A DNA stretch of 63,981 nt, counting the filler, from Hyphochytrium catenoides (lineage: Eukaryota > Protista > Hyphochytriomycota), in NCBI GenBank assembly GCA_900088475.1. It is 12 parts of 12 records of this genome, joined end to end, with 100 filler letters (N's around TTAATTAATTAA, not from the genome) between each part and the next. Parts side by side here need not be neighbours in the genome. Positions count along the whole stretch, not along the records: positions 55,290 to 56,948 come from FLMG01003193.1; 11 more parts are not named here. One strand, written 5' to 3'. Shown in pieces: positions 55,290-56,948 of the stretch. The notes below the pieces were generated by a model. That model worked only from the letters and a program-made list of their open reading frames with translations. It did not search any database and was not told where the DNA came from. The position numbers were made by a program, and so were the translations under genes. Every line of letters begins with the position of its first letter. Within the stretch, counting starts at the first letter, position 1.

Positions 55290-56948
55290 GAGCGCAACAT
55301 TGAGGTACGCAACCTCTTCGCCTGGGATCGAGGCTACGGTGGGACAGCTGGTGAGATTAACTCTAAGACGATCAAGGCAGGCTCAGACCTCATCGGCACC
55401 TCCAAGCGGATTCGCTCCTTTCCGTTCACTTTTGGGCAAAAGCCGTCCACCACCCAAGTTCTGGTCGAAGAGCAAGGTAGCCAGGCTTCATATTGGTGTC
55501 GCCGAGAGCTTGAGGGACCAAGAGGCTCCCGCAAAAAGCAGTTTGCGATGGCCTACAGGACTGGGATGGGTAAAGTAGTCCTGGCACAGACTACCTTGGA
55601 GCATGAAGCTGGTCCTGGCAAGTGGTGTTACGTACCCCAAGACGGTGATTACCATGATGATGTGCCCACCGAAGGCCCATTTCTTCGATTCGAGATCGAG
55701 AACGTCCAGCTTCTTACCGCATCCCAAAGGACGCCAGATTGGTTTCTTCTGCGGAAGTTTAGGGTTACCGGGTCAGTGGCGTGGCAGACATGGCAGGTGC
55801 TCGCGAGAGAAGAGAGACAGCGTCTTGCTGAGGATCAGCATAGGCTTCTATCCGAGGAGCATGAAAGATGCGCTAGAGATGGAGATCAACCTCGACCTGT
55901 AACATTTCCTGAGTCTACTCTTGAAGAGCCCGTGAAGAAGGTGATGCAGTTGTTGAGTCTGACATATCTCCCAACTGGTGGCCTCCAGTCCGTCATAGAC
56001 CAACAGCCAGACAATGCTTCATCTTATTTCTCTGAGGCGGAGTTAGGCCTGCGAAGGGTTAGTGACTTGAAGGCGATCTGCCGAGGACGAAATCTCTCAC
56101 CCACAGGTAGCAAGGCCCAGTTGATAGAGAGGATCCTGGCTGCTCAGGAAGATCGAGGATATCATTCTTCAGTGGAGAACCGGACGAACCTTGGCTCTCT
56201 TATCTTTGGGCTGTGGTTCTTGAAGCCGCTTAAAGGATCTTCTAAGGTCCCTGACCTCAAGCTAGGGACGAAGAATGAAGCTTATGTGCTGAGGCATCTT
56301 CCTGCTTTTATTTCCCGTCATTATATATATAATGATGTTGACATGGCTTCTGGGGAGAGGTACCTAGGCTGTGGACCCTTTGTTGAAGCCATAAAAGAGT
56401 ATGGGCTTCTATGTAAGCGAAACCAGCCGGAGGCTGCCTTTTCCCCTGATGGAATGATGGTAATTGTCTCTCCTGACCGCGGCCGTTATCTTGCGGGTAT
56501 AGAGATAAAGAGTAAGACGAGGACGGAGACCACTGAAGCTGAAGAGAAGCAGCTTATGACGGAGTGGGGTCGCTTTGTGCGGGTCAATGTCTCTCTCAAT
56601 CCCGATCGTCTCAAGCAGTGTATACCAAGCCTGTCTTATAGGTGCCAGATTCTGCACAATATGGCTTGTGCAGGAGTCACTGATTGGTATTATGTCGGGG
56701 CTTCGCTGACCAACATCATTCGGGTCGTCCACGTGACCATCAGCACCACCGACGCTGGCCTCTATCGAGCAGCTCTTCAAGGTGTCAGAGAGAAGTATTT
56801 TAGCTGGGTATATGATGCATCTCTCTCTCCTCCTGAATATCTCTTTATGGAAGACGCGAATTTGGGACACGCGGTCGATGCCCAGACAGTGGTTCAAACT
56901 TTGTCTCTCTGGCGCTCTTTGAGCAATCTGGTTATGGACAAGGGCCGC
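55290..56948 (+). mobile_element. Putative DDE transposase containing SAP and YqaJ/lambda-exonuclease domains (partial; open from gap to gap)
   Basis: The frame is open from 55290 (553 codons). AWDRGY 55320-55337, IGTSKR..FPF 55392-55427, QRTPDWFLLRKFRVTGS ~55725, SAP VSDLKAICRGRNLSPTGSKAQLIERI ~56058-56135, GTKNE, AFSPDG 56436, EIK 56502, YRCQILHNM. Confidence 0.7.

Follow-up and report, generated by a model that had tools for sequence, protein, structure and literature searches.

piggyBac is among the best-studied and most-used eukaryotic transposons, and its hallmark is seamless excision without DNA synthesis. As Mitra et al. are said to have found in 2008, the 3′ ends of the element are nicked, hairpins form on the element ends, and 5′-TTAA overhangs are left on the donor flanks. 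These flanks re-ligate seamlessly, so that a jump gives no copy gain. The subject of the present study is a 1659-nucleotide (nt) piece, positions 55290-56948, of a window of 63,981 nucleotides (filler included) in which 12 parts of the Hyphochytrium catenoides assembly GCA_900088475.1 are joined end to end. The piece very probably comes from the interior of the only gene of a DNA transposon of the piggyBac superfamily; this gene encodes a DDD transposase within which a lambda-exonuclease/YqaJ nuclease and a SAP domain are nested.

Lambda-exonuclease-like nucleases have been acquired independently by ISL2EU (PMC4122938) and KolobokE (PMC9587614). The ISL2EU elements are, as here, eukaryotic cut-and-paste elements carrying a YqaJ-type exonuclease, but this exonuclease is a separate second open reading frame (ORF), alongside an IS5/Harbinger-type transposase that has a THAP domain. 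KolobokE shares with the present family a DDD/E transposase and a lambda-exonuclease-like PD-(D/E)XK nuclease in one protein, as well as TTAA targets, but belongs to the Kolobok superfamily, with its C/DxxH signature and 5′-RR termini, and has its nuclease downstream of the transposase. Tn7 also combines a DDE transposase (TnsB) with a PD-(D/E)XK nuclease (TnsA), giving two active sites per end; by contrast, these are separate polypeptides, and TnsA is a restriction-enzyme-like endonuclease, not a lambda-exonuclease-like one. In the largest piggyBac survey, which comprises 13,693 subfamilies, acquired domains are located at the N and C termini only, and the piggyBac insertion domain is involved in DNA binding and integration (PMC13461360). 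No description of a piggyBac fusion with a nested nuclease and SAP domain was found in the full-text literature, a search in which Repbase and Dfam deposits were not covered.

Organization of the Open Reading Frame

The piece (FLMG01003193.1) has a G+C content of ~51% and is bounded by N on both sides. Frame +1 contains no stop in any of its 553 codons and reaches the N on either side; the estimated probability of an open run of this length arising by chance is ~1e-11, assuming ~3 stops per 64 codons. The ORF track begins at the ATG at 55548 because the mechanical ORF list requires a start codon, and the same frame stays open back to 55290. A preliminary description of this DNA had claimed such an uninterrupted frame beyond the ORF track, which was borne out by translation of 55290-56948. 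All of the motif strings quoted there were found, in the order given, in the 553-residue translation. These are AWDRGYGG (residues 11-18), IGTSKRIRSFPF (35-46), AMAYRTGMGKVVLAQTT (86-102), QRTPDWFLLRKFRVTGS (146-162), GTKNE (326-330), YGLL..QPEAAFSPDG (371-388), EIK (405-407), and YRCQILHNM (450-458).

The nuclease is inserted between the second and third catalytic Asp of the transposase, at the end of the piggyBac insertion domain, and the SAP domain is inserted after the N-terminal helix of the nuclease. The layout predicted from the models is three levels deep, with the SAP domain in the nuclease, the nuclease in the region of the piggyBac insertion domain, and this region in the RNase-H-like core. 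The features of the piece are as follows.

55290..56948, + strand: ORF fragment of 553 codons, both ends cut by contig edges; very probably from the interior of a piggyBac-type transposase in which a nuclease is nested.
55290..55625, + strand: piggyBac catalytic-core segment, residues 1-112, with the strand bearing the second catalytic Asp (WDRGY), the GT-x-K/R motif, and insertion-domain beta-strands (..AYRTGMGKVVLAQTT); aligned to residues 286-400 of P0009, an intact Plasmodiophora brassicae homolog of 1043 residues, and by profile to piggyBat 300-375.
55326..55328, + strand: Asp13 codon, for the second catalytic Asp of the triad; Asp in 62/64 family members and aligned to the catalytic Asp motif of piggyBat.
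55713..55784, + strand: N-terminal segment of the lambda-exonuclease/YqaJ fold, residues 142-165, with Q146, W151, and R155 (VIA alignment, conservation).
55785..56189, + strand: helical linker and SAP domain, residues 166-300, inside the nuclease fold (Pfam; skipped by the lambda exonuclease alignment).
56046-56144, + strand: SAP domain proper, residues 253-285 (Pfam).
56190..56918, + strand: PD-(D/E)XK nuclease core of the lambda-exonuclease/YqaJ type, residues 301-543 (VIA, Foldseek, conservation).
56277-56279, 56448-56450, 56502-56504, 56508-56510, and 56646-56648, + strand: nuclease key codons E330, D387, E405, K407, and Q453, respectively.
56919..56948, + strand: start of the return segment into the transposase (..LVMDKGR), cut by the contig end (homolog alignment).
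56897, no strand: assembly-graph fork, with a depth rise and a second path joining.

Similarity to piggyBac Flanks the Nuclease

A family profile of 114 sequences, the H. catenoides piece included, matched the piggyBat transposase (9c0f, E 9.2e-20) and the Trichoplusia ni (T. ni) piggyBac transposase (6x67, E 3.3e-12). A profile of eight sequences had reached only SAP domains in the PDB; the piggyBac match came with the 114-sequence profile. The alignment to piggyBat consists of two stretches. In the first, profile positions 18-341 lie on piggyBat 42-375, pairing lslDDD with LSLDE, alDRGy with YMDNYY, and GTakr..P with GTIRKNRGIP; the second-Asp region of the piece itself is placed there with DRGY against MDNYY and GTAKR against GTIRKNR. 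In the second, positions 710-876 lie on piggyBat 405-576, pairing WNrlKGgiD with YNKHMKGVD, and the Cys-rich domains are aligned too. It follows from this two-stretch alignment that ~370 profile positions stand in for ~30 piggyBat residues.

Members of the family thus share with piggyBac and piggyBat (6x67, 9c0f; DDE_Tnp_1_7 plus zf-Tnp_2) the DDD triad, an RNase-H-like fold broken by an insertion domain, and a C-terminal Cys-rich domain, together with the motifs LS.DD/E at the first Asp, D-x-x-Y and GT-x-K/R at the second, and (W/Y)N..KGG.D at the third. They differ in having a nuclease and SAP module of ~370 residues in place of a loop of ~30 residues before the third Asp, and they are so divergent that single-sequence Pfam scans detect DDE_Tnp_1_7 in 5/43 near-full-length members. 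Upstream of the part covered by the piece, the homologs have an N-terminal region with an LS(M/L)DDD..LRS motif; in P0005, Pfam matches this region to the start of DDE_Tnp_1_7 (31.9 bits, above the cut-off).

A piggyBac-like (Y/W)NxxKGGVD motif had been anticipated just after ...LVMDKGR, where the contig of the piece stops. In homologs 34-40% identical to the piece, the equivalent of ..LVMDKGR is directly followed by RPLPxGRHxxPxxxALWN(R/K)xKG(G/P)(I/V)D, or more loosely RPLP.G(R/K)H..P....WN(R/K).KG(G/P)(I/V)D..SR, and then by a Cys-rich tail, so that WN..KGG.D does follow the nuclease. This tail, seen in homologs and lying outside the piece, matched zf-Tnp_2 at 25.6 bits (cut-off 24) on the second exon of a further relative, L002. 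A tandem rather than nested fusion, in which a separate transposase would end within the first 100 residues, was considered and rejected on the finding that the third-Asp motif and the Cys-rich domain come after the nuclease in every full-length member.

The full-length fold was tested on P0009, not on the truncated protein of the piece. The AlphaFold2 model of P0009 had a mean predicted local distance difference test score (pLDDT) of 87.7 and a predicted template modeling score (pTM) of 0.82. VIA-align superimposed residues 62..879 of this model on piggyBac (6x67_C; Z 26.2, root mean square deviation (rmsd) 3.3 Å, 369 residues) and residues 420..762 on lambda exonuclease (Z 15.8, rmsd 3.4 Å, 204/228 residues). 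Because the span 420-762 falls inside 62-879, the lambda exonuclease fold lies wholly within the piggyBac fold. A Foldseek search of the PDB with the same model gave piggyBac as the best match (E 1.2e-7), followed by Tn5, piggyBat, and lambda exonuclease (E 4.7e-4). Membership in ISL2EU or Kolobok was rejected, as the transposase part matches piggyBac/piggyBat and the next-best fold is that of Tn5.

These data uphold two earlier claims, that the piece encodes a DDE-type (IS4/IS5/piggyBac-like) transposase and that a YqaJ nuclease with a SAP domain is nested after its second Asp. The earlier interpretation is largely right, with the qualification that the DDD transposase represents a lineage of the piggyBac superfamily and not a new superfamily.

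The Nested Module Has a Lambda Exonuclease Fold Split by a SAP Domain

The SAP domain (PF02037) was recognized by Pfam at residues 253-285 with an E value of 7e-10 (38.7 bits against a cut-off of 23.9), and this region matched solved SAP domains, including structure 2kvu (Z 6.0, VIA-align, nuclease model of the piece). The nuclease was far fainter in sequence searches. Scans of the protein against NCBIfam and PHROGs gave only faint lambda exonuclease and RecE hints, and a PDB search with the single sequence of the piece gave the SAP domain plus weak nuclease hints. The Pfam YqaJ match of the piece is sub-threshold, and YqaJ was detected at E<=0.01 in 2/43 near-full-length members in single-sequence scans; the assignment therefore needed structure.

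A model of residues 135-553 of the piece had a pLDDT of 90.9. In VIA-align it matched lambda exonuclease (3sm4_B) with Z 15.6 and rmsd 3.4 Å over 201/228 residues, LHK-Exo with Z 14.5, mimivirus R354 with Z 12.6, and the Epstein-Barr virus (EBV) alkaline nuclease with Z 10.7, and the nine best Foldseek matches were all lambda exonuclease or LHK-Exo. The alignment to lambda exonuclease begins at model residue 8, which is protein residue 142, and extends over model residues 8..409, but only ~200 residues are aligned; those skipped form a long helix, the linker, and the SAP domain. Of the YqaJ motifs with a SAP domain inside them that the preliminary description reported, the SAP domain is thus established by Pfam and the lambda exonuclease fold by the model, whereas the Pfam YqaJ score falls below its cut-off. 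As this score is sub-threshold in the piece and in most members, the nuclease is a divergent branch of the YqaJ/lambda exonuclease family, recognized by fold and motifs and not by the Pfam model.

With lambda exonuclease (Red-alpha), LHK-Exo, RecE, and the herpesvirus alkaline nucleases, the nested domain has in common the fold (Z 14-16) and the motifs E, D, E-x-K, Q, and an N-terminal W..LR..(I/V)T. Those enzymes are free-standing and act with a single-strand annealing partner; by contrast, the nuclease described here is nested in a transposase and split by a SAP domain, and the element encodes no annealing protein.

Both Active Sites Are Conserved

In the 114-sequence alignment, the first, second, and third Asp of the DDD triad are present in 56/61, 62/64, and 69/72 members, respectively. 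The nuclease columns are conserved to a similar extent: E330 in 75/79, D387 in 77/81, E405 in 77/83, K407 in 79/84, and Q453 in 74/78 members, and, in the N-terminal segment, Q146 in 66/74, W151 in 65/70, and R155 in 68/72 (numbering of the piece). We take R155, in the W..LR..(V/I)T motif, to be the counterpart of the lambda exonuclease arginine that binds the 5′ phosphate. Among the 43 near-full-length members, which are 20-44% identical to P0009, the DDD columns (D215/D216, D298, and D796) and the nuclease columns (E569, D611, E629, K631, R434, and Q676; P0009 numbering) are all >=90% conserved. The piece holds every conserved active-site residue that falls within its span. Judged by their residues, both active sites look functional.

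A catalytically dead nuclease, serving as a DNA-binding or oligomerization module, would account for the weak Pfam YqaJ score. This explanation is nevertheless very unlikely, given that the conservation of E, D, E-x-K, R, and Q reaches 92-96% across members that share only 20-44% identity with one another, a pattern that is expected of purifying selection on catalysis.

Size and Distribution of the Family

A word-based search returned seven proteins that are 34-40% identical to the piece over 47-100% of it. Among them were Phytophthora fragariae PF004_g21779 (annotated as a “SAP domain-containing protein”), one P. brassicae protein, and several metagenome proteins. An exhaustive profile search of 1.84 billion representatives gave 2765 matches with E<=1e-3; of these, 1208 passed E<=1e-10 and 351 passed E<=1e-30. 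Dozens of proteins of 1000-1300 residues matched the whole profile in one stretch. Named members include P. brassicae CEP03823.1 and XXQ33955.1 and Dinochytrium kinnereticum KAJ3209788.1, labeled “hypothetical” or “SAP domain-containing”; the remaining members are from metagenomes and Logan assemblies. The family occurs in Rhizaria, oomycetes, and chytrids. In a metagenome pattern scan with a four-sequence alignment, 285 patterns matched and none was confirmed.

That single-sequence Pfam scans detect DDE_Tnp_1_7 and YqaJ in so few members (5/43 and 2/43) may be the reason that the family has escaped notice. The labels in the records, together with the failure of such scans to find either enzymatic domain in most cases, indicate that transposon annotation is probably incomplete in oomycete, plasmodiophorid, and chytrid genomes.

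Some of the longer members, P0048 (1260 residues) and its cluster, have an additional B-box zinc finger at the N terminus (Pfam zf-B_box, E 4.8e-6), and their best profile stretch starts only at the nuclease. These members indicate that there are sub-lineages with other N-terminal DNA-binding modules.

Termini and Mobility of Related Elements

The element in P. brassicae locus L003 (OVEO01000017.1, 9736-13566) is 3831 bp long. It begins CCCTGGCTTTTTT and ends with the exact reverse complement, giving 13-bp inverted repeats, and has ATAA on both flanks. The whole protein is encoded in two ORFs, one of 838 residues, between which there is either a frameshift or a short intron. A second assembly (L004) contains a 3499-bp stretch with 100% identity to this element; the sequence to the left of this stretch is unrelated, and on the right it abuts an assembly gap. 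The two halves of a G-alpha gene lie on either side of the 3831-bp element, at L003 8842-9716 and 13390-14215, and in the public gene model P0007 exons of the transposase are joined to the C terminus of G-alpha, which makes this model a chimeric annotation. The insertion in the G-alpha gene may be polymorphic between isolates, since the left flank differs in the identical copy of the other assembly.

The element encoding P0010 (L007 1183-5394) is 4212 bp long and comprises one intron-free ORF of 1130 residues between inverted repeats starting CCCCAATCC. Five metagenome contigs with differing flanks carry this element at 99.95-100% identity, and its flanking 4-mers are ATAA/CTAT, CTAA/TTAA, and TTAA/TTAG. 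In two Joint Genome Institute (JGI) metagenome contigs (L011 1-4212 and L010 1-4215), the whole contig coincides almost exactly with the element, its two inverted repeats included. This extent is expected if the element is multi-copy and the assembler halts at its ends; the contigs could conceivably represent an excised form.

The L002 element has the ends CCCCAACC ... GGTTGGGG, followed by TTAA, and contains ten copies of the motif TTTTATCCTAGA, in both orientations and on both sides of the gene. Similar subterminal palindromes were found in all four species examined: TTATCCC/GGGATAA, TTATTCTAA/TTAGAATAA, and TTTGTCCT../..AGGACAAA. The ends of piggyBac likewise carry subterminal repeats, which are bound by its Cys-rich domain. 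The relatives of the piece have, in common with piggyBac and piggyBat, 5′-CCC...GGG-3′ inverted repeats, 4-bp TTAA-like flanks, and subterminal repeats, but the flanks in this family (ATAA, CTAA, TTAA, TTAG, CTAT, and CTAG) are not strictly TTAA. Taken together, this is what a piggyBac-type element would show, with a target that may be relaxed to NTAN. The preliminary description had suggested looking for inverted repeats and target duplications (TTAA?); in relatives, the repeats were seen with 5′-CCC ends and TTAA-like flanks, and the one matched duplication was ATAA/ATAA.

A fusion produced artificially, by merging of adjacent genes or in a chimeric contig, might be suspected from the fragmentary source assembly and from the inconsistent gene models of homologs (P0004 and P0007 skip parts). 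This can be regarded as refuted. The piece is covered by three sequencing runs, and the order second Asp, nuclease, SAP, nuclease, third Asp recurs in one uninterrupted ORF in many independent contigs, as exemplified by P0010 (1130 residues, no intron, five samples) and the 838-residue ORF in L003.

The H. catenoides Copy in Sequencing Reads

The piece was found, as Logan contigs, in three small DNA runs of one organism, and these contigs extend it by 279 nt upstream and ~1.7 kb downstream. From 56897 rightwards the contig depth approximately doubles (74.6 vs 158, 991 vs 2080, and 10.8 vs 29.7 in the three runs). A second assembly path joins at this position, and a 29-nt loose end before it, AACATCCCTAAGAAAGGGTAAGTGATGAT, is present in all three DNA runs. 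The graph fork and the doubled depth suggest that at least two copies or alleles have the 3′ part in common; the second path could come from a non-autonomous copy with an internal deletion or from another member of the family with the same 3′ part. Run X3 (depth ~11) shows a 1-nt deletion at position 55680, which reflects either an error in sequencing or an allele or copy with a frameshift. One 181-nt contig from a soil metatranscriptome agrees with 56589-56769 except for a single mismatch, which is a weak hint at expression and a soil habitat.

Domesticated piggyBac genes are known, such as PGBD5 and ciliate PiggyMac, and the gene in H. catenoides might similarly be an immobile host gene derived from a transposase of this family. 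Such an origin would suit the clean frame over 553 codons, the match in the soil metatranscriptome, and the fact that no element ends are visible within the piece. It is, however, quite unlikely: the fork and doubled depth at 56897 suggest more than one copy, the contig is short, as is usual for repeats in assemblies, the catalytic residues present in the piece are intact, and the relatives, with their inverted repeats and identical copies, are clearly mobile.

Proposed Role of the Nested Nuclease

A lambda-type exonuclease degrades the 5′-phosphorylated strand of a duplex end. The most economical role for the nested enzyme would be resection of the donor flanks, which we propose tentatively and at somewhat less than an even chance. 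In this model, the DDD site would excise and integrate the element as piggyBac does. The 5′-3′ exonuclease, on the face of the insertion domain, is taken to lie near the flanking DNA, where it would load on the 5′-phosphorylated TTAA overhangs and resect them straight after excision. The sticky ends would thereby be destroyed and the seamless re-ligation typical of piggyBac blocked. The resulting 3′ tails could then direct homologous repair from a sister or homologous chromosome still bearing the element, for a net gain of one copy per jump, while the SAP domain might help to hold the DNA end or chromatin. The separate acquisitions of such nucleases by ISL2EU and KolobokE argue for a general benefit.

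Alternatively, the nuclease might act on the transposon ends and not on the donor flanks, by making a TnsA-like second (5′) strand cut, by opening or trimming hairpins, or by removing 5′ overhangs before or after integration. It shares the PD-(D/E)XK superfamily with TnsA, which is restriction-enzyme-like, it is nested beside the catalytic core, and the relaxed flanking 4-mers (NTAN, not strict TTAA) could reflect an altered end chemistry. The closest folds, however, are those of processive 5′-3′ exonucleases (lambda exonuclease and LHK-Exo, Z 14-16) and not of endonucleases, the conserved Arg of the W..LR motif (68/72) matches the 5′-phosphate pocket of lambda exonuclease, and the fully conserved DDD triad means that the usual hairpin route is available. 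On this balance a role at the transposon ends appears unlikely.

The most far-reaching interpretation is that of a previously undescribed, widespread, and recently active piggyBac lineage with a two-active-site transposase, in which the exonuclease would resect the donor break and homologous repair would restore the element. This combined reading is possible, and is advanced with slightly more reserve than the resection role by itself. Several points weigh against the main explanation of the piece, a piggyBac-superfamily transposase with a nested nuclease that would resect the donor flanks. The contig is cut at both ends, so that the piece shows only the second Asp of the DDD triad (Asp13), the first and third lying beyond its 1659 bp; the Cys-rich domain, inverted repeats, and target duplications also fall outside it and are known from relatives alone. 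Any activity and mobility of the element in H. catenoides are therefore putative. A matched target duplication is present in one element only (ATAA/ATAA), and the metagenome contigs show unmatched NTAN flanks, possibly because their assemblies are chimeric across repeats. The Pfam YqaJ match of the piece (PF09588; E 0.007, 17.1 bits) is under the gathering score of 22. Lambda exonuclease acts as a trimeric ring, and such a ring might be unable to assemble within an oligomer of the transposase; the path from resection to homologous repair is purely inferential for every member.

A large natural lineage with a conserved, predicted 5′-3′ exonuclease and a SAP domain in the transposase insertion domain suggests a different handling of the donor break from that of piggyBac. 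With this lineage, a cut-and-paste superfamily has for the third time independently acquired a lambda-exonuclease-like nuclease; the two earlier cases are ISL2EU and KolobokE, and in neither of them is the nuclease nested. If the proposed role is correct, a seamless, non-replicative transposon would have been turned into an effectively replicative one, and a natural transposase with built-in resection would give genome engineering a new scaffold. The capacity of the piggyBac insertion domain to accommodate a folded insert of ~370 residues is in addition of practical interest for the engineering of transposase fusions.

Genomic Surroundings of Two Related Copies

Directly past the right end of the L002 element, at L002 3981-4088, is another ORF with an acidic N terminus resembling the start of family transposases; this may be a second, adjacent element. 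The P. fragariae copy (L001, QXGC01002098.1) carries three frameshifts, and the region of the second Asp is missing from its gene model. The ends of this copy could not be fixed, short palindromes alone flanking it. An RXLR effector gene (PF16810) is located at L001 6325-6681, ~1.2 kb downstream of the degenerate copy, an arrangement that fits the known transposon-rich, effector-rich compartments of oomycete genomes.

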